From Octopus bimaculoides (Eukaryota), in contig NC_069000.1 of the NCBI RefSeq assembly GCF_001194135.2, positions 33,397,433-33,438,368 of the forward strand: a stretch of 40,936 nt of DNA, in the 5' to 3' direction. Each line of letters begins with the position of its first letter. Positions within the stretch are counted from its first letter, which is position 1. Shown here piece after piece: positions 13,144 through 40,634 of this stretch. The translations under genes were made by a program, and so were the position numbers. The notes under the pieces were generated by a model that was not told the DNA's origin, ran no database searches, and worked only from the letters and a program-made list of their open reading frames with translations.

Positions 13144-13291
13144 TTTCTTTGATTGCCATTTTACCGATCTGCAATGGCCTCAGATCGTTGGATATGAAAC
13201 CCATTTGTGAGTCGATTTTGGCAGACATTAGTCACGAAACAGTTACTTTATCATTTCCCTCGGATCTTACCGGAATCTGGACATCGCAAAG
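13144..13291 (+). CDS. APCDD1: APCDD1-like protein, internal exon (exon 2-like, phase 1 to 2)
   Basis: Long T-rich acceptor ...ttattctattatccag|, consensus donor AAG|gtgagt; 148 nt encoding xSLIAILPICNG-LRSLDMKPICESILADISHETVTLSFPSDLTGIWTSQR. Resembles the APCDD1 N-terminus as recalled (human [31 protein letters not shown]|CE; second repeat LHGEWVSQRCE). Intron phases match my recollection of the vertebrate gene. Not database-verified. Confidence 0.65.
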
Positions 13292-13732
13292 GTGAGTGCA
13301 ATTTCTGTCAAGTACTTATGCATGTTAAAAATGATCGTACATTCGCGCACCCACGCATACACAGACACGCAGATACACTCACACACACACACACATACAC
13401 ACAAGCATGCATGCACACATAACAGCAAACAATATGCATAGTCGTTTGACATCGAATTGCATATAAATACAGGAAAAAAGCACACACACTCCTGCAGACA
13501 TGCATACACAAATGCATACATTTCCACACTCACTTCATCAAGTAAGCACGCTCACAAACACACACACCAGCAACAGACACCGTGTATAGGTTGGTTATAA
13601 GTTGCTTTAACATTTCACTCATTGAAAAAATCAGAATAAATGAAAAAACATTTATGTAGTTGTTTCGGACCTTGAGAGAAATTAAAAAGGTGAATTTTTT
13701 TTTTCTCATTTCATTATTGGATACCGCTTCCT

Positions 13733-13865
13733 GACGGCGAGCTGGCAGAATCGTTAGCGCGCTGGGCAAAATGCTTTCGGAATCAATAAAATAAGTACCA
13801 GTTGAACACTAAAGTCAACATAATCGACTTACCATCCCCACCCCCAACGTTTTGATAAGTGCCAA
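13733..13865 (+). mobile_element. Family B SINE, internally deleted
   Basis: gacggcgagctggcagaatcgttagcgcgctgggcaaaatgcttt..aataaaataagtaccagttgaacact. Confidence 0.8.
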
Positions 13866-13917
13866 CTCACGAAACTCTTGGATCTTCAGCTACACTGTTA
13901 TTTCTGCTAAATATTAA

Positions 13918-14165
13918 TATGTGTAGGTGTTGGTGGGTGTGTCTATGTGTGTGAGAGTGTGTGAGTGTGCGTATGTGTGTGTGCGTGTTAGTGTATATGC
14001 GTGTGTGTATATGTCTATAAATACACACGTGCGCATGTGTATGTGTGTGTGCACGTGTATGTGTGTGTGCATGTGTATGTGTGTGTGCATGTCAGTGTAT
14101 ATATATGTATATGTGTGTGTGCGTATCACTATATACAGGTGTGTGTGTGTGTGTGTGTGTGTAAA
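13918..14165. repeat. Degenerate (TG)n/(TATG)n tract
   Basis: Direct. Confidence 0.9.
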
Positions 14166-15704
14166 TAAATACATGTTTTGACCGATTCTTTACGGCGAAA
14201 TGAAAAAGCAGCCTCAAGTCCAACAGGATTTAACTTCAGAATATAAATGGGTTATAATTTCAATATTCTTGTTTAGTATTATTGATAGGCAAGTTCCAGT
14301 GTTAGGGCTGGCGTTAAGTTTGAGAACACGTGAATCGTTTCAGTCAACATTTTTCTATTAAATTGAGTTCTAACTTAGGCACAAGGCTTGGCCTACATGT
14401 GGTTTGTGAACGAGTATTGTTGATTAAATCAACTCCAATATTAGGCTGGTGCCGCTTGATACGTACCACAGACTGTTTGATAGATATAAAAGATCCTCAG
14501 GAGAATTTGAACTTAGAATTAATCTCAACACTGAGAATTGAACTCAACACTGCAAGGCATCTTTGATACTGTTCTATCTATTTTAATATTTATTCCCCTC
14601 CTCTTTGTTTCTATTTTCTGTCACTGCTTTGTTTTAATGTCTGAGGAGCGATAAAGTATATGGAATAGGGGATGAAAACCTTAAATATTCACTTGATACT
14701 TTAACATTCTGATTTCAATTGTTACCAGAATCGGCTTGACTGAGTTTCATCTTCCGTCGATAAAATAAATACTGGTAATATACTGGAATAAATTACAATC
14801 AATATTTACCAATTTTCTTTCAAGTTTGTGGACTTGCTCTCATGTTAGAGAGAGAAAAAGACATGGAATAAGTTACATTTCTTTGGTTTTCGAGAGCAAA
14901 TTTCTCAGAAGTTGTCTTTCTGTTCTACTTCTTTTGATTTGATAAAATCAAGACCTAGTTATATACTGTTTCCAGTTTGATTTCATTGCACGCACACACA
15001 CACACATACATATATACCCACCCAATAAATTTATAGTATTAGGACAAGAAGTCTGTGACGATTACTTTAGACATGACACAATAAAAACTTTAAAAGAAAA
15101 TAGATTAATTGTGACACGCACCCTTGTTAATACATTTCAGCGATTTATTTATTCTCCAAACCACACAGACATACACACACATATGCGATAATAAAATTGC
15201 AAGCTTGACATCCTGCTATGATATTTGAACTCAGACTGCGAATGACCGCAAGGTCTTTTTATTAAGCTCGGCGCTCAACCGTTTCTACCAACTCACCCCC
15301 TTACCATATCTAAAATGTTGCTTTTACATCACTTTGTTTAATTTTCTGCTGTCAAAATTAAAAGATTTTAAGATTCTTTGGAAATCATTTATTTACAAAA
15401 AAAATGCGTATCATTCCGAATGTATTACAGCTAATTGTACAAAAATAACAGTAGCATTAATAACGACATTAAATTTAAAGAGCTGGGATGTGCAGCTCCA
15501 GTAATAAATATAGAGGAACAAGAGATATCACGCTGGAACCGAATTCACCAAATCCGCCTGTGTTGTAATTATCCCTGCAGAAAAACTGAATAGTGAACCA
15601 ACGTGGAAGCTCCTACATGGTTTTCAACTTGTTAGGAACAATAGCAAATCACTTTCAAACCACAGTCTTGCCATCTTTAAAAAATATATATATTGTATAA
15701 TGTA

Positions 15705-15790
15705 GTACTGGATATTCACAAAAGATGGATGGTCATGTCGGGAAAGCTTCTGATCATAGGTCTGCTCGATCAGGGCTGACGTAGGACGAA
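15705..15790 (-). repeat. Short dispersed octopus repeat (ccctgatcgagcagacctatgatc...atgaccatcc)
   Basis: Related copies within the window at about 11005-11065, 24685-24735 and 32240-32300. Confidence 0.55.
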
Positions 15791-18242
15791 ACGCCAACAT
15801 CATCAAGAACAGCAGCCAAACGAGGACTCATCAGGAGGAGGATGTCTATGCGGCTGATCGACCTATGGCTCATAAGAGGAAAATCTAAGGAAGAAATTAA
15901 GAAGAGAAGAAAACTTAATGCCTTAAAGAGTTTAAGGTCCATATCTCATTTTGATTCTAATAATAACGGTTTTTAATCTGAATATGTGTAATGATTTTGA
16001 GTATAAATTTTAGCCAACTGCAGTACATCAATGGTACTAACAACCTGTTACATTTAATGTTGATGGATTGGAATTCAAATTCTGTTCATTTGGTTGCATT
16101 TGAGCATTCAGATGTTGAAGCAGGACGGAAAGTAAATGTTTGCAAGATGTGTCCGGAGCTCTACAGCTTTTGTCAACTTTCACCGACTTAACTTCTCCAA
16201 TATATACATAAATACACACACGTCGTTTTCCTTGCAATTGGGTATTTGTTCACTTGTCACATAAACTCGTCCTCCTTCACGTTCTCTGTTTCCTCTCACA
16301 ACTTATCTCTCACTCATTTCTTTTCACCTCGATTCTATCGTTATTGAGACAATAGGGAATAAATCCTTTTTTTTTTCTCTTTCACCTTAAGTGACAAGAA
16401 GCTTGTCGGCGATTTGCACTATAAAATACTTTATTTCATAATAACGAAAAACAAAATAGTAACAGTAACAATAAAAAGAACTATACCAAAGAATAGAGGT
16501 CAAACAAACGTGTTTCAAATGTTTTATGGCGCAGGAAACATTAAAACAAACCAGCATTTTGAAGAAAGTCACACAAGTGACTTTCTTTGTCATTACGTCA
16601 GGTTTTATTTCATTACTACCGACGGTCATTATTGTGTTGTAGAAGAAAAACGAGCTACACTAACGAAGGTTTTTGCAATTTAACAGGCATATGCAAAAGT
16701 TTTAAGTGCATATTTGTTTCAAAAGTAAATTTGACAACTTTTTACTTTTTTTCCTACTTTATGGGACAGGGTGTTAAGCACCACCGCCATCATCGTTTAA
16801 TTCAAATTGGTGACAAAATGGTAGACCATTTCGTTTTACTTTATTTCGTGCTTCTCTTACATTTATATTTTCTTTTATTTCTATTTCTTTATATATTTTG
16901 AATTTTTACTTAATACGCTACTCCTATGTTTATTTTTATTATTTCAGTCTATCATTTCAACTATTTCAACTGTATATGTGTGTGTTAGTAAATGGCCTTT
17001 AATTCTTAGAAACATTATATTCATACTGTCTCATAAATCTCGTGCTTTTCCTCCCCTTTTGCTGAACATATGTGTGCGCGCGCGGGCGTGTGTATGTGTG
17101 TGTGTGTATGTGTGTGTGTGTATGTATGTGTTCATAGGCGTATATATAGAACAATATGCGTAATTTATAGTAAGTATTTCTAAAAGGATTTTAACACTTT
17201 CCGAAGTTACACATTTTTATCTGATTACTTTGGGCATTTAACACCTTATTTACCACCATAAATATAAAGTGATATCACATGACACTATATTCACAGACAC
17301 ATACACAGACGGAAACTGAAGCACACACACATAAACATGTGTGTGAGTGGAGAGAAAGACTGTGTATGTGATAGATGGCAGTAGCAACGAAGTTTCGGCT
17401 AACCGTCATCAGACTGTGACTTAGTTTGGTTCTCCAAGCTTTTTATATGTTTTTGACAGCATGTGCATTTGGTGGATGCAAGGATGTATATGTAAATTGG
17501 TTGTGATGTGAATTTGTAGAGAGAAAGTAGAAATGGCTGTAATAAACGTGTAGTGGGAGATGAACGGGAAGCAAGCGCGAGTCTAAAGGGTGTGGTTTGG
17601 GACGGTAGGAACAGTTGTTTTGGCTTAACAAAAGAAGTATGTTCTCTTTGGTAGCGGTTTCTGGTTGGTTAAAAGTAAAGGATTCTTTTTTGTTTATGCT
17701 ATTGTTTGTGCATAAATCTGAGTACTGAAATATTTGCATAAAAGTTCACGTAAGAGATAGGTTATATTCGAGTCAAAATTTGTGTTAGATGAAAATTTTC
17801 TCAGGCCTACTCAGGATTATTTTGTTACTGTAAGCTGTTAGAGATTGGTATTATGCTATTTTAGTATTTATACGAGAATATTTCTAGATACAATTGTGAC
17901 AGGTTCAATTCATATTAATCATAGATCAGGGACGTATAGAAATTAGCGGTCAGTGTAAAAGGCTTGCCTTTAAGTAAATATTGAAATATATTTGTAAAAG
18001 GCTTTTGGTTAATTTAATTTTTGTTAGTATAAGTTATCTGATGGAGTATACCGATGTGTTCCTAGTTTAATACATTTAGATATCTAAATAAAAGTATATA
18101 TACGACACATATAATTATACATATAGGCATCAATATTAACATATAAATATATGATTATATATACGCTCACATATTTGTACACATATACATAAAGACATAC
18201 ACATAAATACATATACATAAAGACATTCACATATGTATATTA

Positions 18243-18461
18243 TACGAGAGAGTGCTAGTAAGTTCCCGGCTTTAAGGGTATCGCGAAACGCCTGGCTGGA
18301 AGCCCAACCTTCAGAGATTTTTTTACAGGGCTTAGAAATACTGAAGGACCATTGCAATAAGCGTGTAAATCTGAGAGGGGAATATGCTGAATAAAATTAT
18401 GTTCAACTGATCCGCCTGTATTTTCTTTTTACTCAAAGCCAAGAATTTTCAGCATCTTGTA
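18243..18461 (+). mobile_element. Mariner-derived non-autonomous element (MITE)
   Basis: TIRs tacgagagagtgctagtaagttcccggcttt and aaagccaagaattttcagcatcttgta with TA ends. The interior encodes a mariner transposase C-terminus, WLEAQPSEIFLQGLEILKDHCNKRVNLRGEYAE*. Confidence 0.85.
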
Positions 18462-18614
18462 CATACTCATTTGTGCACAAGTGCATGTGTGTGTTCGTGC
18501 ACCTCTAAAAGCCGAATTATAGCAGAACTATATATACATATATATACATATATTGCAAGTGGTAAGAAGCTTGCTTCCGCGAATGCGTCGGGTTATTTGC
18601 TGTCTGGATTTTGT

Positions 18615-18805
18615 AAGAGTCGGACGCAGTATTTTGTGTTGCTCAGGTGTACTCAGACCTTGACGGGTCTGAGTTGTCGTCGGCGGAGGAGGAGCTGGTA
18701 AGGGCGGTCATAAAGCTGGACGGAGTATTGAAGAGAAGGAGTTTTGCTGAAGCCACGGAGGTGAAGCAAAGGGAGCTGGACTTGGCTAGTTTGAAGGAGT
18801 ATGAC
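18615..18805 (+). mobile_element. Probable LINE (L1/Tx1-type ORF1 end) fragment
   Basis: GC-rich open stretch YSDLDGSELSSAEEELVRAVIKLDGVLKRRSFAEATEVKQRELDLASLKEY fused to a SINE head. Resembles a recalled octopus repeat; class assignment is tentative. Confidence 0.4.
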
Positions 18806-19149
18806 TCAACCGGAATACTCAAATACACTCTTGATTTTCGAGTATATTACGACCCCATTCGAAAGCTACAACAAAGTGAGTAAGCGCGTTGCTGATCAGC
18901 GATATATATCTCCATCCAATTGTCTGGTCGATAAAGTGATGCAGTGATATATGTATGCATACACAAACATATATATACACATACATACATGAACGTGAAT
19001 CTCATTACGTATACATATACATACACAAATAGATCCATACAGATGTCCTGCATCTGTTCATATAGGCGACTCCTCCATTAGAACTCTTCTCGTATCTTAC
19101 AAGGCCGTTGATCTCACGCTAATAAAGTTAGGCAAATGGTAATGGTATT

Positions 19150-19345
19150 TTCATGTAGGGGCACAAGGCCATCAGTTTTTGCTTTTGTTTTTTTGCGGAG
19201 GGACTAAGTCGATTACATCGACCCCAGAGCTCGAACCCAAAAGGATAAAAGACAAAGTAGACCTCGACGGCATTTGAACTCAGACCGTAAAGTCGAAGAA
19301 GCACCGCTACGTATTTTTCCGGCGCCGTAGCGATACTGCCAGCAC
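19150..19345 (-). mobile_element. Family B SINE
   Basis: ggcacaaggcc...aagtcgattacatcgaccccag...ggataaaagacaaagtagacctcgacggcatttgaactcag. Confidence 0.8.
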
Positions 19346-19927
19346 ACCTTATGCTGATTTTAAACTCATCTCATTTTATTACCGTCATGAACCTTATCGT
19401 TGTCTTTTATCTTCATTTCTATATCTACTTAACCATCTATTCTTTATCTTATTTATTATCTGTAATTTTACATTTTTTATTAGCTATTTTATTCCTTATT
19501 TTTCATTATCATCACCATCAACACTGTTACCACGCTTTACTAATTAGTACACTTTCTGCAGTCAAATATGCAATGTTCAGCATGGACTGCTTTCCGGGTG
19601 TTGGTGCATATTCAGTTGTTTGGGTATCTGCTAACTGCAATAAGGCTTCACTTTTACATCATGCAGTTATAGCTTTCATTTACGTTGTGCATTTGTTAAA
19701 TTTGTTGGTCTACTTGTTTCCTGCTTCTGATTTGGATATTCTAGCTTTTCTCATTATGAAAGTGTTAAGGGTTGAATTAGATTGCATTACATGTTCGTTT
19801 TCCTTTTATTGTTAGTTAGAAGCTTGATAGCAAACTTCACTTTGTTATAGTGGTTTGCAGTGCCGTCAAATGTTATTTTATCTGAGGATATTCCTGGGGT
19901 GTTTTGATTAATATTATTCACAATGTG

Positions 19928-20060
19928 GTAAGGAGGTGAGGTAGCAGAATCGCTAGCACTCTGGGCAAAATGCTTTGCGGTATTTCGTCCATCTACACGT
20001 TCTAAATTCAAATTCGACTTTATTTTCTCATTGTTTCGGAGTCGATAAAATAAGTACCAC
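19928..20060 (+). mobile_element. Family B SINE truncated by the adjacent RTE
   Basis: ggaggtgaggtagcagaatcgctagcactctgggcaaaatgc...gtcgataaaataagtacca, then an abrupt switch to RTE sequence. Confidence 0.8.
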
Positions 20061-20500
20061 CCTCTTCATCAGAAGCAGCCATCGTTAGACTTCCCAACTA
20101 GATTCCCAAGCATGACCAATTGATATTATAGGTATTATCCAACCATCTCGTTCTTGAACTACCCCTAGGTTTGTCTCAGCTTGAAGAATCAGACTTGCTA
20201 TTCTTTTCTGTGACATTCTAATCACATGTCCGTAATAACGGTGCTGTAACATCACAATGCAGAGAAGTAGTACCTTGAACTGGAAGGACTCCCTGATCTC
20301 CGAGCAACGTATCGTGTCGAGTAACGTTATACCAGTTATATTTCGGAGAATCCTCATTTCAGCTGTTTGTATTCGCTTCAATGCCAGAATCCAATATATC
20401 ATTGGTACTTTTTGAATTGATTCTGGAGAGTTGAAAAGAAAGTGAATTTTGATGAGATTACGTAGGACTTTTGTCTGACACTCGGCTTTTTTAGCCACCC
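20061..20500 (-). mobile_element. Decayed RTE LINE 3' fragment
   Basis: ORF 20085-20498 contains KRIQTAEMRILRNITGITLLDTIRCSEIRES...QHRYYGHVIRMSQKRIA, the RTE C-terminal AEMRxLR...RxxEIR...LRxYGHVxRM motif. Confidence 0.85.
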
Positions 20501-20524
20501 ATCACATTTCTTATTAATAAATAT

Positions 20525-20935
20525 TGGTTTCAAATTTTGGCACAAGGCCAGCAAGTTTCGGGGAGGGGTTAAGTCGATTACATCGATAAATTGGTACTTA
20601 ATTTATCGATCCCGAAAGAATGACGTCGGTGAAATTTGAACTCATGATGTAAAAACGGACGAAGTACGGATAAGCATTTTGCTCGGCGTTCTAATGATTC
20701 TGCCAGCTGCTGCCCCGAAATTAATGATGTTACTATTTAACATAGGTACGGAGCCATGCATTTTGAGGAGCTTAATAGTCCATATGATTATCGATCTGTG
20801 TATATTACAGGTATTTGCTTAATTGATTTCAGAAGGCAAAGTTGATATCATCGAGATTCGAACTCTGAATTTAGACGAACATAGCTACGACAAACTACCT
20901 TCAGGCATATTCGCCGGCCACCGCGCCGAATTTTG
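20525..20935 (-). mobile_element. Two family B SINE copies
   Basis: tttcaaattttggcacaaggccagc...tggtacttaatttatcgatcccgaaag...tgattctgccagctg; a second decayed copy at about 20750-20935. Confidence 0.75.
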
Positions 20936-21473
20936 CTATTCTACCACCCTCACATCAATGTACATGGAAAAGAAACGGAAGTTTACCGAAATATTTGATA
21001 CATTGCAGAAATTAGTTAAACGAGAGACCTAGTTGTTGAAAGAGGAGAATATATAAACATATTTAAAACATTCTCTGAATGATGTTTGCTTGATAAATGG
21101 GCCTGTTGTTTGGGACGTTGTGACAGGCAAAAAGATCTGTATTTCGTTCAGGTACATGGCATATATATATATTCATATGTCTCTATGTACATGGAAATTT
21201 ATATGAGTGGATGAGAGCATAATGTGTGTATGTGTGTTTTGAGTACTTAAGGTATGTTTTTATTTTATTTTAAGCATTAAGTTTTTCTTTTCCATTCAGT
21301 TAATATACGTAAACATTCGTATGTTTATGTACGTATATTATGAATTTATGTATGTAGGTACATGTTTATGTGTATATCTATGTGACTATATATATATATG
21401 TGTGTATTCATTTATATTTGTATCTACACATAAATGTATTTACATGTGCTTATATACATATATATCTGATAAT

Positions 21474-21474
<1 letters not shown>

Positions 21475-21521
<47 letters not shown>

Positions 21522-21752
21522 CGTCGTTGTGTGTGTGCGCACGTGTGTGTATAATATATATATATATATACATAAAATATACATAAAATATGCATAAAAG
21601 TAACTGTATATATTAACATATATGTATGTGTATATATGCATGTATATATATATATAGATGTGTGTGTGTATATACATGTATATATGTGTATGCATATATG
21701 TATACATGTAGATATGTATATATATACATGTATATGTATATATATATGTATG

Positions 21753-21830
<78 letters not shown>
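21475..21830. repeat. (TG)n and (TA/TATG)n microsatellites
   Basis: Direct. Confidence 0.95.
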
Positions 21831-21833
<3 letters not shown>

Positions 21834-21854
21834 TATGGTGAAATGATCATATAT

Positions 21855-23210
21855 CCAACACACGTTCGTGTCTCTAGTTGCTGGGTGTATATGAAAAGCA
21901 AATATAACCTTCTTCTTTACCCGGAAGACAAATAAAAGGCATTTCATGAATTGTATATACTTGCTGAATGGTATACGTGACACACGAGATGTAAATATTA
22001 AATAGGAATGACTGGGAATTCAAATCGCTGCTCTTTGCAAGTAGATACACAACGAAGTGCATCAACACGCTCAGGCTTAACTTACACTTGAAGCAGCAAA
22101 ATATAAATATTACTCAAAATAAACAAGAATATATTTTGATTTGGGATTTGTTTCGCAAGATTCTTGATGTGAAATCGTGTGTTGAAACAGATATTGCTGT
22201 GAACATCATTTTGCCGATAAAAACACATGCTCCCGTTTTACTTATTTTGCTTTTGTTATTATTGTTAGTCAACGCGTTAATTAATTAACCAATAGGTGCA
22301 GGCAAGGATGCGTGGTTAAGAAGCTTGTTTTGCAACCACGTGATTCAGGGCTCAATCCCACTGCGCGATACCTAGGACAAGCGTCTTCTGTTATAGCTCT
22401 GGACACACCAATGCCTTCTGAGTGAATTTGATTGACAGAAACTGAATGGAGCACGTCGAGAAAGTGTGTGTGTTGTGTGGGGGGGGGTCACATAGCTTGT
22501 CAACCGGTGCTGGTTTGTTTACGTCTCCATAATTTAGCAGTCCGGAAAACGAGACGGGTAGAATAAAACTTTAATAAGTACTTCCTTCAGTCTTTCAACT
22601 AAAATCCCTTCAAGGCGGTGCTCCAGCATGGCCGCAGTCCAATGACTGAAACAAACAAAAGATAAAAGATAAATTAGCTAGTTGAATGGAAACAGAATCA
22701 TTGGCGTATATTTTCATCAATAAAATCGATCTACCCAACATACGATTGATTTCTTATGTTTGTATTTTAGAGAATCTACCGACGTACTCAATAAATTAAT
22801 AGTTTCGGTGAACAGTATACTTATATAATACGCAAACTAACACGATTGAATACAAAGAAAGACATATAACCATGACAATCAAGATACGTTATGGATCTGA
22901 ATCTTTCATACGTTCAGTAAAAACCATATATTTTTGTTGTATTTTGAGCAATATCTATAATGTATGCCGATAAGTGTAGGTGAAATCTGAACATGTTTAT
23001 ACATTTCCTGTGAGTTATCTTGGTGCAAAGAAGAAAGATTTCAATTCACAGTTATTTCAATTACATAGTACGCTACGTACATTATGTATTCGGTTTCCGC
23101 GCGTGTATACAACTTAGTTCAATTCAAACACCTTTTATTTATCTTCCGACTGAAGAGAGTTTTGCTTTATTTGATATACACCCAGCAACGAGAAACACGA
23201 ACGTATAGCA
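21855..23210. repeat. Long imperfect inverted repeat (arms about 21855-22140 and 22920-23210) enclosing a SINE
   Basis: The reverse complement of 21860-21940, ccttttatttgtcttccgggtaaagaag...atatacacccagcaactagagacacgaacgt, matches 23133-23205 ccttttatttatcttccgactgaagag...atatacacccagcaacgagaaacacgaacgt. Homology continues inward. Confidence 0.85.
22293..22672 (+). mobile_element. Near full-length family A SINE
   Basis: tRNA-like head gcgtggttaagaagcttg...gggctcaatcccactgcg; 3' end ggcggtgctccagcatggccgcagtccaatgactgaaacaaacaaaagataaaagata. Confidence 0.9.
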
Positions 23211-23269
23211 TTCCTTGACTTGTTTTCGATTTACTTAATCTCTATATCTTTATATGTCTAAGTGTGGGT

Positions 23270-23316
23270 ATGTATGTTTTTATGCATATATGTATACGTA
23301 TACATTAAGTGCATAA

Positions 23317-23385
<69 letters not shown>

Positions 23386-27774: not shown

Positions 27775-27847
<73 letters not shown>

Positions 27848-28784: not shown

Positions 28785-28833
<49 letters not shown>

Positions 28834-30528
28834 GCACGCACATTTACATATATATATGCATACATACATGTACATACAACTCTTCGAAACGCCCGTGTTA
28901 AGACGGGGGTAGCTGATGAAGGAAAATGTTCTCTATGTGGCTTGTGTGTTTTCTGTACTCTGGTTATTATTATTTTCTTGTCTACGTTTTGTTTGCAATG
29001 TCCTGTACCCAGATATGCACCTATATATACAGGCAGACGTAGGTATGCACATACTTGTACGTATATATGCATATACTCATTTACCATTCGTTTATGTATA
29101 TATATATATATATATATATTGGGACGGGAAGCACACACATAAAGCTATAAAAATAGCATATAAATATTGGATTGAAAAACACTTTTGGACAGAAAAAGTC
29201 GAAGGCTGTGGAAAATCCAATGTGGACAGGGAAAATTTGAAAGGAGAGAAATTAATGAGAAACATCATATTTGTGCATACTCCAAGGTATAAAAACACTG
29301 GCTGCAACTGATCATCATCAGTCGTCTACTTCCAACTTCTTTTTCTGAAGAAATACACTGTCCGAAGCGTCGGATTTTCCACAAGTCACAATAATTTCAC
29401 TATATTCTTTTTATCAATTTTGCTACATAAGAATTTCCGACGCACACCAAAACCAGCCTTTCTGGAATCTGTTTGATCACGTGTATGCGTGTGTGTGTGT
29501 GTTGTAGTGTGTGTGTACGTTTGTGTATCTGTGCGCGCGTGTATGTATGTATGTATGTATGTATGTATGTATGTATCAACCAAATGCTGACACATCCTTC
29601 TCGCCCTCCGACTCTCAAATCCACAGAGTTTCGCTGGGTCAAGTGTGAGAGGATAGAGAGACTATTTATATCTGCTCGCAATTAGATAGGCACCTAGAAC
29701 AATTAATGAAAGCATGGTACAAGCTTCCTAGTCGGCTACGCTTTATGCCATTTGTATACGTGTATGCGTACGCGCGTGCACTTATATGTGTATAAATACA
29801 TCTGTATACACGTATCATATATGTAGGTGGGTGTATTTTGAATACTTTAAGAATTTATTGTATACGACATTTAGAATATCACTCCTTTAACTTAATTATC
29901 CATATTCATGCTAATGGAAAATTTGACTAATTTCTCTACCTTTTTTTTTTTTTTTGCTATTTAATTATGCCATTAATGTCCTAAATACTCCGCTCTTTGA
30001 TCATTTTAATGATAGCACTTTCGAACATACGCATACAGACGCACTATTTCGGTTTGAGAGAATAGTCCAATAAATTCACTTCAGTACTTAAATGGTACAT
30101 GTTTTTTTTATAGAAAACTGAAAAAGAATATTTTTTTAAATCTCAGAGGATCGCACAGAGCTTTGAACTTGGACTCCAAAGTATATATAACTAAATGCAT
30201 AAAGTATTATGTCTAGCACACATTCTAGCCTACAATCCAGGGTCTTTACATAAAGTAATAAGATCTACATGATATAGCTTAAAATATACAAATGCTTAAA
30301 AAGAACAATTCTGTGAGCAACCTACATATAAACAAACACGCTATAAAATTGGATCCAAACGAAGAAAAGATAACACCAACAGCAACAACTTCAATAAATA
30401 CAAGGGGAAAGGGACGTAAAAAAAAGTGAACCTGATTCTAATTCAATATTGAAAAATATATTACATTTCTGCTATTATTTTTTTTTTTAATCTTATTCAA
30501 TTCTATTTTATTTAAATAATATTATATG

Positions 30529-30560
<32 letters not shown>

Positions 30561-30591
30561 TGTATGTATGTATGTATGAATGTATGTATGC

Positions 30592-30603
30592 AGATCGGAA
30601 GAG
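30592..30603 (+). other. Illumina adapter remnant at a contig end
   Basis: AGATCGGAAGAG, the TruSeq adapter prefix, lies immediately before the N run. Confidence 0.9.
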
Positions 30604-30800
30604 NNNNNNNNNNNNNNNNNNNNNNNNNNNNNNNNNNNNNNNNNNNNNNNNNNNNNNNNNNNNNNNNNNNNNNNNNNNNNNNNNNNNNNNNNNNNNNNNN
30701 NNNNNNNNNNNNNNNNNNNNNNNNNNNNNNNNNNNNNNNNNNNNNNNNNNNNNNNNNNNNNNNNNNNNNNNNNNNNNNNNNNNNNNNNNNNNNNNNNNNN
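30604..30800. other. Assembly gap
   Basis: N run. Confidence 1.
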
Positions 30801-31689
30801 ATATATATATATATATATAGTCATTGTAGGAGAGCAGAAGAAATTCTCCTCCCATAAAAATAATATTGTGAAGTACGTAGCAATGATTAACTTCTAGCAT
30901 AGGCACAAGAAGTGGAAAGATAAAGTGAACTAAATCGCCACCAGTACATCACTGGTATAAACGACTATTTAGCTGAGTCATTAGTGCGTCGGAGATAATG
31001 CTATGCGGTATTTGTCCCGGATCTCTGCATTCTGAGTTCAAATCTTACTGCCATCAAGTTTTCCTTTCATCATAATTGAAAATACCAATCTTATATTAGA
31101 CCTTTCTTTTTTCTTTCTTTAATTTGGCTGAGCTTTACCTCGAAAAGGGTCGTGGAAGAACCATTTATGAAAAAGAGTTGAGCACTGAAGTTGTTGCTGT
31201 TGTTGTCATCTTCTCTTCGTTTGGATCCAATTTTATGGCGTGTTTGGTTAAATGTAGGTTACTCTCATAAGTGTATTCAGTCACCGTTGATCGGAAGGGT
31301 ACAAGTGTACTGAACCAACGTCGATCGGATACTAAAATTTAATATCAGCAAACGACGGGATGGTCACGACTCAAATACCTTTGAACGTACATCTATTTAC
31401 TCAGCCAGCGTTGACCAGATCTAACAACAGCTAACGACGGAATTGTGATGATTGGAATATATTTGTTCGCAGCTGTTTTCGATCCACAACTGCGTAAGAA
31501 GCCTCAGCATACCATTGCAGGTCTCCTTCTGTTAATGGTTGGCCTCCTTGTCAATGACTGGCTGGAAGTTTTGGACAAATGCTGGTGCGAACTCTTGTAG
31601 ATTATCTGTAACCATCAGCACATTAGACAGAATTTCATACTGCGGGGAATCCTCTCCGATGCTCTTATTTATAATTCCACTAATCCACT

Positions 31690-31850
31690 ACTCCGGACCG
31701 GCACTTATTTATTTACCAACCCTGAAATAGTAAAGAGGGGGAAATCGACCTCGGCGGATTTGAACTGATGAACAGACATTCGACACCATTATTTTCGGTT
31801 TTAGTTCCACTCTAACGGCTCTACCATTTCGCTGCTTATAAAATAATTTT
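31690..31850 (-). mobile_element. Decayed family B SINE
   Basis: ggcacttatttatttaccaaccctgaaa...aaatcgacctcggcggatttgaact. Confidence 0.65.
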
Positions 31851-32052
31851 CTAGCTTAATTATTCAGGGATAATTTTATTTGGTTATTTATAGTTTTTAT
31901 TTATTTATTTATTTATTATTTATTGAGGGATTTGTAGACTCAACTAGATTGGTGCCAGTGCATGGCTGGAAGAAGTGGGTATGAACTAAGAATGTAAAGA
32001 AATGTAAGTACTCGCAAGGCTCATAAACACTATTTTCTTTAATGAATTAACA

Positions 32053-32065
32053 CGATGATGATCGC

Positions 32066-32101
<36 letters not shown>

Positions 32102-32200
32102 GGGACAGAGGAAGCCGACGAAGACGATGACGATGACGACGACGACGATGATGATGATGATGATGACGACAATGATGATGATGGTGATGACGACGACGAC
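32053..32200. repeat. (GAT)n/(GAC)n microsatellite
   Basis: Direct. Confidence 0.95.
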
Positions 32201-33021
32201 CGAAGTTGGAAATCTGCAAAAAGAACTATCGAGCGCTGTTTAGGCCAGTCCTTATAAAGTAGACCGATGATTCAAGACATTCCAGCCATGACCATCTCTG
32301 TTTTAAATTCAAACATAGAGAGCCACATTATGCAATATGTCTTTTTGTCTTCTTAAGGTGTGATTTCAGGAGAGATTTGGCTACTATTTCTAAGAGCTTG
32401 AGGATTGCGTGATGGGATGTTGGCGTGGCGTTATTTTATGTTCTCTCATGACAAACGATGTTTTAATCTTTTTTTTTTTTAAATTCAATTTTTACTGGAA
32501 TGTTCTGGGGGTAAAAAAATAAGCCCTCAAACATTTACCACCACCTCAACTTTACTTGTCGCTACTACCACCTCTCGTTCACCGAGATTTACTATTAATT
32601 TCTTGGTTTGTTATTGAAAAAAAAATAACTAAATATCGCCGGCACATGTTCCCCCAACCCAGGCACAGACTCACGAAAATAAATAACAGAGAGAAAGATA
32701 GAAAGAAAGAAAAGACAGGAAAAAAAAACACTAGATTTTTATTACCTTTTTTTGTTTTAATAAGCAAACACAGGAAACACGTTTCACCAACATTCTTATT
32801 TCGATATATTTACTTGGCTAAAAGTGGTGGGTGGCGGAGTCAGTAGAATATACTGGACAGAATACTTCACGTACCTTTAATTATGAATTCAAATCCTGCG
32901 TAGATCGATTTTTGCTTTTCAGCCTTTCTGAAGTTCGTTCGTTGTTATCAAGCTATATTCAATGTCATCAAATAAAACTTTGTAATTTTGCAGGAACACG
33001 ATTATATTTCATCTTTGCATT

Positions 33022-33168
33022 AGCATAGCTAGAGGGTGAAGAGGCGGTCCGCTCCGGGCAGCGTTATTATGGGGCGACTCTTTTGGGTCTTTTATATAAA
33101 CCTATATAGGGAGAGGCAGCAAAATCAAGGGTGGCCCTGGCGGCACACACTCTTACTACACGACTGCA
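33022..33168. mobile_element. Short GC-rich MITE-like element
   Basis: Ends gcatagctagagggtgaagaggcggtccgctccgggc and ccctggcggcacacactcttactacacgactg resemble decayed cagtggcgtagctag-type terminal inverted repeats. Confidence 0.45.
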
Positions 33169-33189
33169 TCCTTGGCCTAATGCCTCTGT

Positions 33190-33790
33190 GAAAAATTATT
33201 GCAATGAACTGATAGAATCGTAAAAGCGTCGAATGAAATACCTTGCGGTATTTGTTACCTTTCAATCTTCTGGGGGGATGGGTAAAATAAAGTACTGGTC
33301 AAGTACTCGAATCAGTATAAACGACCTACCACTCTCTTCAAATTTCCTGACCTTGTATGTACGTTACCGACAAGTATTACTACTTGGATGGTAACATCGG
33401 TGATGTGTTGGACAAAAAGCTTTGCAGTGTTCGTTCGGCTCTTTATTTTCTGAGGTCGCTGAAATAAAGTAACTGTCAAGTATTCAGATCGATTTAATTA
33501 ACTGTTCTTCATTCTTCTCTCCTCAAAAGTCATGCATAATGTCTTTGTTAGAAACGATTTTTATTGTGAAAATGGTGGCTAAGTTGGGGGAGCAACCGGA
33601 TCGTTAGAAGGTTGCGCAAGATATCTTGCGGAATTTGTACCGGCTCTTTATATTATGGGTCAAAATTCTGGCGAGGTCAACTTCACCTCACTTACTTCTT
33701 GGGTCGATAAAATGATGTACCAATCAAGTACATGATGATATTGACTAAGATTCTCCTCTGAACATTTCTGACCTTGTGCTTCAATCAGAA
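33190..33790 (+). mobile_element. Three consecutive decayed family B SINE copies
   Basis: Repeated atcgttaga..aaatac/gcttgcggtattt...taaaataaagtac..tcaagta units at about 33205, 33385 and 33590. Confidence 0.6.
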
Positions 33791-34030
33791 ACTACTGTAA
33801 AGAGGGCGGTAGATTGGTAGAACCGTTAAAGACACCGCAAAAACTGTTGCTAAGAGTTTCACGTTCGCGTTCGTCGGATACTTTTGAACTGTCTGACAAA
33901 CGGGAACGTGAAACTCTTAGCAACAGTTTTTGTGATGTATTTGCAGCTTCATTAATAAAGCATATTACACCGCCTCCGGTATTCGACTGCTATTTTTTCC
34001 ACCTTGTTTCACGTTTATGTGCTTACTCTG

Positions 34031-34090
<60 letters not shown>

Positions 34091-34984
34091 AACAAGTTTT
34101 AAAATAATGGTCATTACATATTTTTCTTTTTTTGAAGCAAGTTTGGTTTACAGCTGTTTCTAGTAGTTCTTAAAGGTACATTACTGATAGGTTTACTCAA
34201 TTAGTTTATTGATCAGTCGAGAAAATTTGAACGACATAAAAAAATTAATGTTGCCTTCATCAGAGCCATTTCTGGTTATAACAAAGCAGAACACTGAAGG
34301 AATGGTGAATGGATGGGGGTGAGAGAGGAAAAAATGGAAAGATGCAAGTAGAATAGAGAAAAGAGGTTGACAGGTTATATATATATATATAGGTATTGTA
34401 AATCTTACCCTGAATTGTGGTACAATATGGACAGATTTTTGAATACCAAGGAAAATTTATGCAGATATAATAATTTAAAGGATAAGCACATTACAATGGA
34501 TAATACTAGGTGGACTTTTCCTTTTTCTCTCTCTTTTTCTTTTTCTTTGTGATGTAATCTTGGGACTGAGAATGTTTGCGGCTGAAGATAGCTTTAAACC
34601 ATCCTTTCTATCAATTATATACTCATATAATGATGCAACGACAGTTTGTGTATAAAGCTTGAAACACGTGTACCGCGGAATCCTTTGCGTTCTATTTTCA
34701 TTTTACGTTTTAATACATATACATATCAACGGGTAAAAAAAAATTGCTTTAAACAGACATATGCACACGCTGCACTTTGCTACAAAGAAATACTCGTGCG
34801 TCAGTGTGGGACATTGAAAACACAAGTTTTCTAAATATCTCCGCATTTTCAGACCCGCAAGAAAAACTCGTGGAATATTAATGGGCAAAACGCAACCGAG
34901 TGGTTGAAAGTGGCTCGCATTGAATCTCCCCTATTGACGCGTAGTGATTAATGATGATGATGAGGCTTATGATAATGGTAAGAT

Positions 34985-35260
34985 GTGGCCGAATAGTTAA
35001 GAAGTTAGCTTTATAGTCTTAAGGTACAGGACTCGATCCCACTGCCTTGGCATCACTGACAAGTGTGTGTTGCCATAGCCTTCTGGCGACCGAAATCCTG
35101 TATTTTTAAAGTGCAATGAAGCTCGAATGAAGCCCGTCAATGTAGTTGTTGTTTGAAAACCTGGTCTTGTCGTACACTGAGTCACGCTAATTCCGCCTGT
35201 TTAACCACTTACACATTATTCGATTAGCAGGTACTTCAGCTGATATAACAGCTGAATAAC
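34985..35260 (+). mobile_element. Decayed family A SINE
   Basis: gtggccgaatagttaagaagttagc...gactcgatcccactgccttggcatcactgacaagtgtg. Confidence 0.6.
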
Positions 35261-35354
35261 CATGCTCGAAACTGACGGAAACTCATATGTATGACGGCGA
35301 TGATGATGATGGTGGTGTGTAGTTTGTTGTTGGTGGTGGTGGTGGTGGTGGTGG

Positions 35355-36096
35355 NNNNNNNNNNNNNNNNNNNNNNNNNNNNNNNNNNNNNNNNNNNNNN
35401 NNNNNNNNNNNNNNNNNNNNNNNNNNNNNNNNNNNNNNNNNNNNNNNNNNNNNNNNNNNNNNNNNNNNNNNNNNNNNNNNNNNNNNNNNNNNNNNNNNNN
35501 NNNNNNNNNNNNNNNNNNNNNNNNNNNNNNNNNNNNNNNNNNNNNNNNNNNNNNNNNNNNNNNNNNNNNNNNNNNNNNNNNNNNNNNNNNNNNNNNNNNN
35601 NNNNNNNNNNNNNNNNNNNNNNNNNNNNNNNNNNNNNNNNNNNNNNNNNNNNNNNNNNNNNNNNNNNNNNNNNNNNNNNNNNNNNNNNNNNNNNNNNNNN
35701 NNNNNNNNNNNNNNNNNNNNNNNNNNNNNNNNNNNNNNNNNNNNNNNNNNNNNNNNNNNNNNNNNNNNNNNNNNNNNNNNNNNNNNNNNNNNNNNNNNNN
35801 NNNNNNNNNNNNNNNNNNNNNNNNNNNNNNNNNNNNNNNNNNNNNNNNNNNNNNNNNNNNNNNNNNNNNNNNNNNNNNNNNNNNNNNNNNNNNNNNNNNN
35901 NNNNNNNNNNNNNNNNNNNNNNNNNNNNNNNNNNNNNNNNNNNNNNNNNNNNNNNNNNNNNNNNNNNNNNNNNNNNNNNNNNNNNNNNNNNNNNNNNNNN
36001 NNNNNNNNNNNNNNNNNNNNNNNNNNNNNNNNNNNNNNNNNNNNNNNNNNNNNNNNNNNNNNNNNNNNNNNNNNNNNNNNNNNNNNNNNNNNNNNN
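35355..36096. other. Assembly gap
   Basis: N run. Confidence 1.
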
Positions 36097-36099
36097 AAC

Positions 36100-36600
36100 T
36101 TTTATTCTCCTTTTCTCCTTCCCTCCTCCTCTTCTTCTTCTTCTTCTTCTACTACTTTCTTCTTTTCTTCTTCTTTTTCTTCTTCTTCTTTTTCTTCTTC
36201 TTCTTTTTCTTATTTCTTCTTCTTCTTCTTCCTTCTTCTTCTTCTTCTTCTTCTTCTGCCACCTCCCCCTCTTCCTCCTCCTCCTCCTTCTTCTTCTTCT
36301 TCACTTTCTTCTTCTTCTTCTTCACTTTCTTCTTCTTCTTCACTTTCTTCTTCTTCTTCTTCTTCTTCTTCTCCTTCTTCTTCTGCACTTTCTTCTTCTT
36401 CACTTTCTTCTTCTCCTTCTTCTTCGTCTTTCTTCTTCTTTCTTCTTCTTCTTCTTCTTCTGCCACCCCCTCCTCCTCCTCCTCCTCCTTCTTCTTCTTC
36501 TCCTCCTCCTTCTTCTTCTTCTTCACTTTCTTCTTCTTCTTCTTCTTCTTCTTCACTTTCTTCTTCTTCTTCTTCTTCTTCTTCTTTCACTCCTTCTCAC
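36100..36600. repeat. (CTT)n/(CCT)n low-complexity tract
   Basis: Direct; source of the poly-K/E ORFs. Confidence 0.95.
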
Positions 36601-36999
36601 ACATTCCTTTATACTCCTTTCCTGCGTTCTTAACCGTTCTCTTTCTATTTTGTGTTCCCTGCCTTCTTTTTCTTTCCTTTCTTCATCTTTATTTCTTTCT
36701 TTCTTTCTTCATTCTGTCTATTCCTCTTTCTTCCTTTTCTTCCTTCCTCTTTCTTTCGTTCTTTTTATTCTTTTACCCATTAATTTAAAACTTCACTTCA
36801 TTTTCTGTATTCATTTTTTGTTTTTCTTCTATTTTTTTACTTATTTGTTTATATTCAATAGATTTTAATTTAATTAAAATAAACAACAAAAACAACATTT
36901 CCCTGCGGTTGGAGGGGAGGGGTAAGTTGTACTTTGAGTAAAAACAAATGTCGAGATAAGTCAACAATGATTGTAATAGGCGAATGTTATGTGATATTG

Positions 37000-37960
37000 T
37001 TGATGCTGGTGGTGGCGGTGATGGTGATGGTTGTAGTAATGGTGGTGCTGGTGATTGTGATGATAATGGTGATGATGATGATAGTGAGGGTGCTGATGGG
37101 GGAGATGGTGGTGGTGGTGGTGGTGGTTGTCGTTGTACTAGAAGTGGCGTTGGTAGTTGGGGTGGTTCCGGTGGTGGTGTTGTGGCGATAACAGTGGTGG
37201 TGGTGGTGGTGTTAAACAAGACGACTTGTAATGTCTNNNNNNNNNNNNNNNNNNNNNNNNNNNNNNNNNNNNNNNNNNNNNNNNNNNNNNNNNNNNNNNN
37301 NNNNNNNNNNNNNNNNNNNNNNNNNNNNNNNNNNNNNNNNNNNNNNNNNNNNNNNNNNNNNNNNNNNNNNNNNNNNNNNNNNNNNNNNNNNNNNNNNNNN
37401 NNNNNNNNNNNNNNNNNNNNNNNNNNNNNNNNNNNNNNNNNNNNNNNNNNNNNNNNNNNNNNNNNNNNNNNNNNNNNNNNNNNNNNNNNNNNNNNNNNNN
37501 NNNNNNNNNNNNNNNNNNNNNNNNNNNNNNNNNNNNNNNNNNNNNNNNNNNNNNNNNNNNNNNNNNNNNNNNNNNNNNNNNNNNNNNNNNNNNNNNNNNN
37601 NNNNNNNNNNNNNNNNNNNNNNNNNNNNNNNNNGTGGTGGTGGTGGTGGTGGTGGTGGTGGTGGTAGAGGTGGTGGAGGTAATGAGAATTGTGCTGATGT
37701 TGCTAAGATTTCGTAACCTACGATCATGGTGGTAAATGACAGTAATGACTGTGGTGGTCCCCGGTGAATGAACACGATGGTTGTAATGGTGGTACTGATG
37801 ATCATCATCATCTTCATCAACCTCATCATCCTCTTTTCCTCCTCCTCCTCCTTCTCTTCCTCCTCCTCCTCCTCATCATCATCATTATTGTGATTTTGAT
37901 GGTGGTAAGAATGATTATAATGAGGAGGAGGAAGACGACGGAACAGCAACGAGAATGATA
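37000..37960. repeat. (GGT/GAT)n and (CCT/CAT)n tracts flanking gap 37237-37633
   Basis: Direct. Confidence 0.9.
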
Positions 37961-38129
37961 ATGATCATCATCCTCGTGATCATGAGAGTGGACACATTGT
38001 AGTTAAAGAGAAGTGGCGAATGATGACACAGTGACGGAAAAGGGACGAGTGCAGACGAGGTGACATGTCCGTACCCGAGGGGTTGGCTAATTAGTGAAAA
38101 TCACTCCTCAATCTGGGTGACGAAGTATC

Positions 38130-38630
38130 AATGATATAATTTGGCTACAGATATCGATAGCATTAGATACACATTCAAGGTCGTTGTTTCCAGATCTTGT
38201 TGTTTTGCTTTGTAGCCAACCCATCTCGTTATGATTTGGAGAGTTTGCAAAGATCCAAAAGACTTGCCATGTCTCCGAGTGTCCTTTAAATCTAGAAGGC
38301 TCTGCTAAGTCTTCTGCGAAATCAATGTACATATCACCTATCTTCAAAACAATCCAATAAAACTGCTGAATACTAGGAACTGGAAGAATGGTTCAGTTAC
38401 CAGTGCTGCCAGGCGCGTTGCGAGGTAACTGAAATGGACCGTCGGGATTTTGTAGGGCGTTCATTCTGCAAAGCTCTGATTGGGTTTGGAGTTTGATATC
38501 GATACAGCAAATAGGTGAGCCATAAAATTCCATTACTAAAGCTGCATAGAAGACCCTTGGAAGCATTGGCTAAAGAGAGCAGACTGGAGGCTTGCGATTA
38601 CAGGGTTGCAAGCTGAGATTTGATCAGCCC
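38130..38630 (-). mobile_element. Decayed CR1-type LINE reverse-transcriptase fragment
   Basis: The minus strand carries AGADQI (GPDxI-like), RSISVTS (YRPISLTS-like) and DMYIDFAE (YxDFxKAFD-like) remnants in the expected order, with stops and frameshifts. Confidence 0.55.
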
Positions 38631-38734
38631 CGGCTAATTCATGTGGGGTAGGGGTCTTATGCCGAAAGGGGTCTTATACCGAAAGACAAACACAAAGATA
38701 TATACATATACACGCACACACATACACACACATG

Positions 38735-39030
38735 ATTTTACTCTTTTACTTGTTTCAGTCATTTGACTGCGTCCATGTTTGAGCACCACCTTTTGCATAT
38801 ATATATCTTTTATATTTTACTAGTTTCGGTCATTAGACTGCGGCCATGCTGGGGTACTACCTTTAAGAATTTTAGTTGAGTGAATAGACCGCAGTACAAT
38901 TTTTTAAAGCCTGGTACTCATTTTATTGATAGCTTTTGCCGAACCGTTATGTTAAGGGGAGGTAAACACACCAACACAAGTTGCCAAGCAGTGGAAGGGG
39001 GACAAATACTGACTCGCGCATGTGTGTGTG
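38735..39030 (-). mobile_element. Family A SINE 3' portions (two tails)
   Basis: ttttactcttttacttgtttcagtcatttgactgcg and gtttcggtcattagactgcggccatgctgg...gccgaaccgttatgttaagggga. Confidence 0.8.
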
Positions 39031-39044
39031 TGTGTGTGTGTGTG

Positions 39045-39283
39045 GATATCGTGGCACTCCGTCGGTTACGACGACGAGGGTTCCAGCTGATCCGATCAAA
39101 GGAACAGCCTGCTCGTGAAATTAACGCGCATGTGGCTGAGCACTCCACAAACACGTAAGATTCAGCGTGACACTGAGCGTGACAAAGCTGGCCCTTTGAA
39201 ATACTGATACAGCAGAAACAGGAAGAAAGAGTGAGAGAAACTTGTGGTAAAAGAGTACAGCAGAGTTCGCCACCCAGCCCCAT
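39045..39283 (+). repeat. Dispersed octopus interspersed repeat, cut by a gap
   Basis: gtggcactccgtcggttacgacgacgagggttccagctgatccgatcaaaggaacagcctgctcgtgaaattaacg; recalled as a frequent octopus repeat, class uncertain. Confidence 0.55.
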
Positions 39284-40055
39284 NNNNNNNNNNNNNNNNN
39301 NNNNNNNNNNNNNNNNNNNNNNNNNNNNNNNNNNNNNNNNNNNNNNNNNNNNNNNNNNNNNNNNNNNNNNNNNNNNNNNNNNNNNNNNNNNNNNNNNNNN
39401 NNNNNNNNNNNNNNNNNNNNNNNNNNNNNNNNNNNNNNNNNNNNNNNNNNNNNNNNNNNNNNNNNNNNNNNNNNNNNNNNNNNNNNNNNNNNNNNNNNNN
39501 NNNNNNNNNNNNNNNNNNNNNNNNNNNNNNNNNNNNNNNNNNNNNNNNNNNNNNNNNNNNNNNNNNNNNNNNNNNNNNNNNNNNNNNNNNNNNNNNNNNN
39601 NNNNNNNNNNNNNNNNNNNNNNNNNNNNNNNNNNNNNNNNNNNNNNNNNNNNNNNNNNNNNNNNNNNNNNNNNNNNNNNNNNNNNNNNNNNNNNNNNNNN
39701 NNNNNNNNNNNNNNNNNNNNNNNNNNNNNNNNNNNNNNNNNNNNNNNNNNNNNNNNNNNNNNNNNNNNNNNNNNNNNNNNNNNNNNNNNNNNNNNNNNNN
39801 NNNNNNNNNNNNNNNNNNNNNNNNNNNNNNNNNNNNNNNNNNNNNNNNNNNNNNNNNNNNNNNNNNNNNNNNNNNNNNNNNNNNNNNNNNNNNNNNNNNN
39901 NNNNNNNNNNNNNNNNNNNNNNNNNNNNNNNNNNNNNNNNNNNNNNNNNNNNNNNNNNNNNNNNNNNNNNNNNNNNNNNNNNNNNNNNNNNNNNNNNNNN
40001 NNNNNNNNNNNNNNNNNNNNNNNNNNNNNNNNNNNNNNNNNNNNNNNNNNNNNNN
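39284..40055. other. Assembly gap
   Basis: N run. Confidence 1.
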
Positions 40056-40226
40056 AACTTTTATCTTACTAAAATTGACTTGAAACCATGGTACAGAATA
40101 TAGATTGGTAAATGTTTTTATTTTTCATCCCCTTTCGAAATTATCCCTACTTTTTGTGGTATGTAGTCTTGCTGCTATTTCTAGCGGGTTAGATGTCCTA
40201 TTACAGGCATCTCTGTATTTTAAATG

Positions 40227-40264
<38 letters not shown>

Positions 40265-40400
40265 GTTTCTGCATTTTCTATCTATCAAATCCACTCAAAA
40301 GACTTTGGTCGGACCGAGGCTCTAATCTAAGACACTTGGTCCAATTCCCGCAGTGGGATTGGACCTAGAACCATATGGCTGAGAAGCAATCTTGCGCCTA
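40265..40400 (-). mobile_element. Family A SINE head
   Basis: aaatccactcaaaagactttggtcggaccgaggct...aagacacttg...cgcagtgggattggacctagaaccatatgg. Confidence 0.75.
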
Positions 40401-40570
40401 TCTTTGTTTTTGTTTTTGTTTTTGTCAGATATGCGCAACAGTTGCACCGTACTATTACGGCCGCTTCAGCCGATGTAGTTGGCCGGTAGGCGACTAAGAA
40501 ACAAAAATAAAATAAAGCAATGATAAAGTAAAATACTACTACCAATCCAACCACCATTACGCACTGCAAA

Positions 40571-40634
40571 ATGGACGTTGCGCTACTTTTACAGAAGCGA
40601 TACTTTTACGTTCCCTTAGTGATAACTGCGGTTG
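40571..40634 (+). CDS. Candidate first coding exon encoding a signal-peptide N-terminus (ends in phase 1); compatible with APCDD1-like exon 1
   Basis: Start context caaaATGG, 21 codons MDVALLLQKRYFYVPLVITAV plus G, donor G|gtatgt, preceded by a CpG-enriched patch (about 40430-40500). Confidence 0.45.

Follow-up and report, generated by a model that had tools for sequence, protein, structure and literature searches.

Can the first coding exon of a gene lie downstream of its second? The question is raised by a stretch of 40,936 bases from Octopus bimaculoides (NC_069000.1, positions 33,397,433 to 33,438,368 of the forward strand; hereafter the window), in which an apparent exon 2 of the gene APCDD1, at 13144-13291, is followed on the same strand, 27.3 kb downstream, by a short frame at 40571-40634 that had been taken for the matching exon 1 (hereafter the original prediction). 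The APCDD1 protein crosses the membrane once and acts as an inhibitor of the Wnt and BMP pathways, and an exon order that was truly inverted would amount either to an assembly error worth flagging or to a rare instance of non-colinear splicing in a gene of developmental signalling. The reading favored here, with a probability of about 0.85, is that the window comprises late intron 1, exon 2, and early intron 2 of a single-copy, colinear APCDD1 gene, of which the frame at 40571 forms no part. The gene is already annotated, the inversion of its exons is not real, and there is no scrambling to explain. The parts of the window on which the argument turns are as follows (N-gaps are runs of N in the assembly).

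1..13143, + strand: APCDD1 intron 1, 3' part (presumed); holds three N-gaps and no exon 1 in its sequenced bases
4110-4801, 6518-7423, and 10124-10600: the N-gaps 5' of exon 2
13109..13143, + strand: acceptor of exon 2 (35 bases), a pyrimidine tract plus cag, read directly as ttttttgttgtttttttattttattctattatccag
13144..13291, + strand: APCDD1 exon 2, 148 bases, entered in phase 1 and left in phase 2, then GTGAGT
13292..40936, + strand: APCDD1 intron 2, 5' part, at least 27.6 kb, with microsatellites, dispersed repeats, four N-gaps, and no exon 3
40571..40634, + strand: the frame taken for exon 1; caaaATGg, 21 codons (MDVALLLQKRYFYVPLVITAV) plus the base G, then GTATGT at phase 1

Exon 2 of octopus APCDD1

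The interval 13144-13291 is a genuine exon 2 of octopus APCDD1. It encodes (V)SLIAILPICNGLRSLDMKPICESILADISHETVTLSFPSDLTGIWTSQ(S/R), and residues 1-32 of XP_052831101.1, the APCDD1 protein of O. bimaculoides (518 amino acids, GCA_001194135.2), are encoded by it with no mismatch (100% identity; MKPICESILADISHETVTLSFPSDLTGIWTSQ, then SCEVRPGPEF…); O. vulgaris and O. sinensis differ from these 32 residues at two positions. With phmmer run unfiltered on 1.84 billion representatives, a single strong match was obtained, the O. vulgaris protein CAI9737514.1 (“APCDD1 domain-containing protein”; E 1.1e-22), to which exon 2 is 92% identical by manual count. XP_052831101.1 and its relatives carry PF14921 (APCDDC; precomputed annotation), and phmmer against the solved APCDD1 structure, PDB 8E0R, with XP_052831101.1 as the query, returned E 6.6e-89 over residues 15-420; the octopus protein thus has the same fold family as vertebrate APCDD1 (8E0R; PMC10193966), the gene for which has five coding exons. 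The APCDD1-like label that the original prediction had given to this exon is upheld via close relatives only, namely the identity with XP_052831101.1 and the match to CAI9737514.1. The vertebrate profile alone fails to recognize the octopus exon: when built from 120 vertebrate APCDD1 sequences and run against the six-frame translation, it gave exon 2 just 1 bit, albeit at the expected profile position, and no other exons. Likewise, tblastn of human APCDD1 against the window revealed no other exons, and Pfam yielded nothing relevant or significant on either the 50-residue exon-2 peptide or the peptide obtained by hypothetically joining the 40634 donor to the 13144 acceptor (GATAACTGCGGTTG/TTTCTTTGATTGCC). 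A word-index search with this joined peptide of 71 residues returned no candidates, which is a false negative, as XP_052831101.1 sits in the same database.

The entry of exon 2 in phase 1 with a hydrophobic run, as originally described, was read directly from the sequence. The open frame 13083-13292 offers no in-frame start codon before the hydrophobic run, and exon 2 therefore requires a short upstream ATG exon that ends in phase 1. Exon 2 supplies the remainder of the signal-peptide hydrophobic core and the opening part of the first beta-barrel domain (the ABD1 first strand region), and its C-N-G stretch of small residues looks, by eye, like a putative signal-peptide cleavage site. The exon also carries a cysteine equivalent to mammalian Cys52, which occupies an invariant column across octopods, fish, and a cephalopod transcript from run ERR4030425; in mammals, Cys52 and Cys466 form an interdomain disulfide (PMC10193966). 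A literature search on APCDD1 in cephalopods and on run ERR4030425 was without result.

The exon-intron structure of the vertebrate gene provides a second line of comparison. Mapping of Anabas testudineus APCDD1 onto its locus gives a first exon of 13 codons and one further base, so that a phase-1 intron interrupts the signal peptide; the second exon stops in phase 2, with …HWVST on its own side of the boundary and (S)CEVR on the other. Exon 1 of horse APCDD1 comprises 19 codons plus 1 base and likewise ends in phase 1 (MSCLCRLLLTYLFPALLLH/G), in keeping with the human exon 1 of about 19 residues that the original prediction had cited, and the end of horse exon 2 is as in Anabas. Both structures agree with the claim that the exon missing 5' of exon 2 must be a short, ATG-containing, phase-1 exon, and both are matched by exon 2 of the window in boundaries and phases (in at phase 1, out at phase 2 one residue before CEVR). 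Exon 3 in octopus starts (S)CEVRPGPEF and finishes the last exon-2 codon. The O. sinensis terminal exon, which follows a phase-0 intron (…KKPS/DRTCKIC…) at the position of vertebrate intron 3, is open to the stop; this uninterrupted exon implies that octopus combines vertebrate exons 4 and 5 in one. The octopus gene therefore shares with vertebrate APCDD1 a phase-1 intron 1 that splits the signal peptide, a phase-2 intron 2 just ahead of CEVR, and a phase-0 intron 3, but departs from it in the length of exon 2 (148 bases versus 184 in vertebrates), in the single terminal exon that takes the place of exons 4 and 5, and in its far longer introns. The range of the gene in four octopods is given below.

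O. bimaculoides APCDD1 range: 144.2 kb, from exon-2 start codon to stop
O. sinensis APCDD1 range (independent assembly): 144.6 kb, from exon-2 start codon to stop
O. vulgaris APCDD1 range: 281 kb, exon 1 included
Argonauta hians APCDD1 range: 108 kb, exon 1 included

As the coding exons from exon 2 on total by arithmetic about 1.6 kb, a span of about 144 kb leaves about 142 kb for introns 2 and 3 together, and since the gene extends about 144 kb past exon 2, position 40571 sits within intron 2. In O. sinensis, the exon-2 start codon lies, by arithmetic, near CM016876.1:17,924,290 on the minus strand, and the initial 27 kb of intron 2 extend from there down to about 17.897 Mb. Exon 2 is also the only APCDD1 exon in the window: tblastn with the O. 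vulgaris protein recovered it (E 2.7e-24) and, on both strands, neither a second exon 2 nor an exon 3, with everything else at E of at least 2.5, and a motif scan of the window for the start of exon 3 (AG-N-C-E/D-x-R/K) returned nothing credible.

The first exon and the frame at 40571

The gene models of two relatives, O. vulgaris CAI9737514.1 and Argonauta hians GAB1601911.1, share with the window the same exon 2 (92% by count; about 64% by tblastn) and the same continuation SCEVRPGPEF, but have in addition an upstream exon 1, MWSTRRQFHHSFGTNAFRTTPTSSMGRIYFTLSYISI/V and MWSNRYSYHRLGGSNAFITTSSSSMGKYFTFLYISI/L, respectively, that the sequenced bases of the window lack and to which the 40571 peptide bears no relation. 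These two first exons follow a common pattern, MWS.R…H..G.NAF.TT..SSMG[RK](I)YFT..YISI, and align with a Smith-Waterman score of 104, compared with 22.7 +/- 4.7 for shuffles, none of which (0/2000) reached it; from the internal Met alone the score is 37, matched by 0.05% of shuffles. Exon 1 is clearly homologous between O. vulgaris and Argonauta. The 40571 peptide scored 13-17 against the octopod exon 1 set and the ERR4030425 start described below, values that lie within its shuffle distribution, 20-59% of shuffles scoring as high. Given that APCDD1 of O. bimaculoides and O. vulgaris is 97% identical where both are modeled, the true O. bimaculoides exon 1 is expected to be near-identical to MGRIYFTLSYISI and unlike the 40571 peptide. 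The ERR4030425 cephalopod transcript (Logan), whose 5' leader contains a stop in frame, starts MGTRYKNATLSTLLVMLLSILPEIGG (MGTRY…), similar to the octopod internal start MG[RK]…Y; none of the Logan-derived proteins covers the 5' portion of APCDD1 from O. bimaculoides.

When the O. vulgaris and Argonauta exon-1 peptides were searched by tblastn against the sequenced bases of the window, no match in 1..13143 was better than E 0.16. The orthologous exon 1 would thus sit 5' of the window or, with lower probability, in one of the three gaps before exon 2, and the joins between the orthologous exon 1 and exon 2 look like signal peptides by eye. O. bimaculoides probably uses the orthologue of the O. 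vulgaris and Argonauta exon. Under the favored reading, the window would begin late in intron 1, take in exon 2, and end 27.6 kb into a very long intron 2; exon 1, upstream of and outside the sequenced bases of the window, would by orthology be close to …SSMGRIYFTLSYISI, end in phase 1 with G, and complete the signal peptide upon joining exon 2, which would in turn be joined to a far-downstream exon 3 beginning (S)CEVRPGPEF. The 40571 frame would represent a chance ATG followed by 21 hydrophobic-rich sense codons and a GT in phase 1.

How readily such frames arise was estimated by counting those that start with ATG, run for 12-40 codons, and are followed, after one further base, by GT[AG][AT]G[TA], simple repeats excluded; a purine at -3 and hydrophobicity of the last 12 residues (cut-off 1.3) served as added filters. 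The window holds 50 ATG/phase-1-donor frames on both strands, 17 of them on the + strand, where the full filters leave two, at 31448 (MIGIYLFAAVFDPQL) and at 40571. A third frame, at 677 (MIPFTVCLTKIAPLY), lies 5' of exon 2, in the “right” order, and fails marginally (T at -3; hydrophobicity 1.27 versus 1.3). First-order Markov sequences of the same length (35 kb) contained 0.49 candidates per strand, and 35% of them held at least one; by extrapolation, a gene of 144-281 kb would be expected to hold two to four such frames by chance. As phase, hydrophobicity, and start context were the selection criteria, they do not constitute independent evidence for 40571.

The features that had singled out 40571-40634, namely its strong start context and its phase-1 end, were confirmed by direct reading (caaaATGg, 21 codons plus G, GTATGT). 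Its assignment as exon 1 did not survive, given the different conserved octopod exon 1 (104 versus 13-17) and the chance rate of 0.49 per strand: the candidate was rejected as being unlike the conserved exon, downstream of exon 2, and of a kind with a high chance rate. A further argument, that the joined signal peptide would be too long, was dropped, the orthologous join having a hydrophobic core almost as long. Most likely, 40571-40634 is a chance pseudo-exon in intron 2, and the frame is presumably never spliced to anything.

Several observations weigh against this view. The O. vulgaris and Argonauta first exons come from automatic gene models, and the RefSeq models of O. bimaculoides and O. 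sinensis place no exon 1; the orthologous exon 1 proposed for O. bimaculoides would accordingly derive from the models of its relatives and not from its own DNA, and the likeness between the octopod exon 1 and the N-terminus of the ERR4030425 transcript does not by itself reach significance. The ATG at 40571 stands in a good context, with A at -3 and G at +4, the frame ends at a good donor (G/GTATGT), the extra base G would give the junction codon GTT (Val), as in O. vulgaris, and the ratio of observed to expected CpG is 1.23 in the surrounding 400 bases, compared with 0.82 for the window. Lastly, the 881-base contig that bears the frame is joined across a gap (39284-40055) without sequence continuity; the sequence on either side is unique and unrelated, and the placement of this contig therefore depends on the scaffolder alone.

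Alternative readings of the 40571 frame

Best placed among the alternatives, although unlikely, is that a separate transcript, either a nested gene or a non-coding RNA, starts in intron 2 with 40571-40634 as its first exon and is spliced beyond the window. The good ATG context and donor as well as the elevated local CpG ratio (1.23 versus a window mean of 0.82) would suit such a transcript, and its downstream exons would be out of view, as the window stops 300 bases on. However, the 881-base contig gives no Pfam, Rfam, or tRNA signal, the unspliced frame runs for just 28 codons to its stop, and candidates of this type arise by chance. In addition, phmmer against the 1.84 billion representatives aligned nothing to residues 1-12 of the 40571 peptide, which is weak evidence because an identity of 21 residues is near the detection limit and the members of the 50% clusters were unsearched.

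Roughly half as probable is that the 881-base contig has been mis-scaffolded, belongs upstream of 13144, and carries a lineage-specific or alternative first exon of APCDD1, the explanation that the original prediction had ranked first. The layout of the assembly bears on this point. The window (36% G+C) is divided by seven N-gaps into eight contigs, of which that with exon 2 spans 10601-30603 (20,003 bases) and that with the 40571 candidate spans 40056-40936 (881 bases); neither exon 2 nor the candidate touches a gap, and the two are parted by four gaps and three small contigs (4554, 1140, and 1650 bases). The same microsatellite flanks both sides of the gaps 6518-7423, 10124-10600, and 37237-37633, which fits local continuity there, and no reading frame of interest spans any of the seven gaps. 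A displacement of the last contig would be in keeping with the discontinuity at its gap, with a phase and junction base that suit exon 2, with the failure of RefSeq to place an exon 1 in the expected position, and with a joined peptide in which about 21 uncharged residues follow a basic one, close to what the orthologous join (MGR plus 20) shows. Set against these points, the peptide is unrelated to the conserved exon 1 of Octopus and Argonauta despite the 97% identity elsewhere, the agreement in phase, hydrophobicity, and ATG context reflects the criteria by which the frame was picked from frequent chance candidates, and a displacement of at least 27 kb would be large for so small a contig. 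Nothing requires the contig to have been mis-scaffolded.

The remaining alternatives are very improbable. A tandem cluster of APCDD1 paralogues, with 40571 starting the next copy, had been put forward on the argument of phase and nothing more, and it is contradicted by the single exon 2 and the lack of any further exon 2 or exon 3 on either strand of the window; moreover, all matches in octopus genomes are parts of one APCDD1 protein, found at a single place in each of the four octopod genomes, the gene continues about 144 kb past exon 2, which puts 40571 inside and not after it, and the 40571 peptide is not exon-1-like. Non-colinear expression, in which scrambling, back-splicing, or trans-splicing joins the 40634 donor to the 13144 acceptor, has phase compatibility alone in its favor and is just as hard to credit, as all points against 40571 as exon 1 apply to it, a back-splice would give a circular RNA of these sequences only and not a full-length APCDD1 mRNA, and the relatives have an ordinary upstream exon 1. 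Equally remote is its corollary, that 40571-40634 is a species-specific alternative first exon that is spliced non-colinearly to exon 2 to give a different signal peptide.

Surrounding sequence and annotation of the gene

Aside from exon 2, the window is characterized by the repeats listed here, and the majority of its N-gaps adjoin very long microsatellite arrays.

1498-1737, 36130-36586, 21478-21831, and 23324-23668: very long microsatellites, including (TAA)59 then (AGA)20, (TCT)150, and long (TG)n/(TA)n blocks
40272-40393, 22317-22452, 3915-4076, and 27821-28059: dispersed short repeat, about 130-240 bases, 70-78% identity; also present at the O. sinensis locus (8074-8300 of the segment analyzed there, which includes the last 10 kb before the terminal exon)

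The dispersed repeat looks like a short interspersed element (SINE) and is without a tRNA or Rfam match; one copy ends in (TTTTTG)n, 150 bases 5' of the candidate ATG. Scans of the whole window for tRNA and Rfam families found no match, and Pfam gave nothing above threshold on ten long open reading frames (ORFs) of the window. Two open frames, 12357-12620 (+) and 20085-20498 (-), contain …LRYKNMLKRHM… and …YYGHVIRMSQKRIA… and are without a significant Pfam match; they presumably resemble the C-terminal tails of reverse-transcriptase ORFs of the long interspersed element (LINE) type. Exact look-ups of the antisense ORF 40557-40883 and of Takifugu APCDD1 returned no record. Two oddities occur at contig ends. 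The (TATG)n contig end at 30592-30603 reads AGATCGGAAGAG, which abuts the N-gap at 30604 and which we take to be the start of the Illumina TruSeq adapter; it looks like adapter read-through that has remained in the assembly. Furthermore, an identical nine bases, AACTTTTAT, open the contigs to the right of two gaps (36097-36105 and 40056-40064), which could be a coincidence or an artifact of scaffolding or gap closing.

The comparison with existing annotation has a practical by-product in the form of truncated N-termini in RefSeq. XP_052831101.1 starts at an internal Met (MKPICES…), without exon 1 and without the preceding codons of exon 2 (VSLIAILPICNGLRSLD…), of which 17 lie in frame behind the strong acceptor (13144-13194), or 18 with the split junction codon; O. 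sinensis XP_029647715.2 also begins at an internal exon-2 Met. Lacking the whole of exon 1 as well as 18 codons at the 5' end of exon 2, the RefSeq models in both species are therefore devoid of the signal peptide, and the missing upstream exon is probably that of the O. vulgaris and Argonauta models. Two further irregularities were observed in the annotation. O. sinensis APCDD1 is annotated as two products of 210 (X2) and 261 (X1, from an internal Met of the last exon) amino acids; in the analyzed segment of CM016876.1 (9860-10786 of that segment), the terminal exon is open from the acceptor at 9862/9863 to the stop, and the X1/X2 split looks like an annotation artifact. An older O. bimaculoides model, XP_014782861.1, skips exon 2 and fuses to exon 3 an unrelated N-terminus of 41 residues (MAMQAEGSFAKRVMFLFELESPTESYNSPTAALFRTDVHTI), which is not in the window. 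In a wider sense, the APCDD1 locus of O. bimaculoides illustrates how easily short frames with an ATG, a hydrophobic stretch, and a matching phase occur by chance in introns on the scale of 100 kb.

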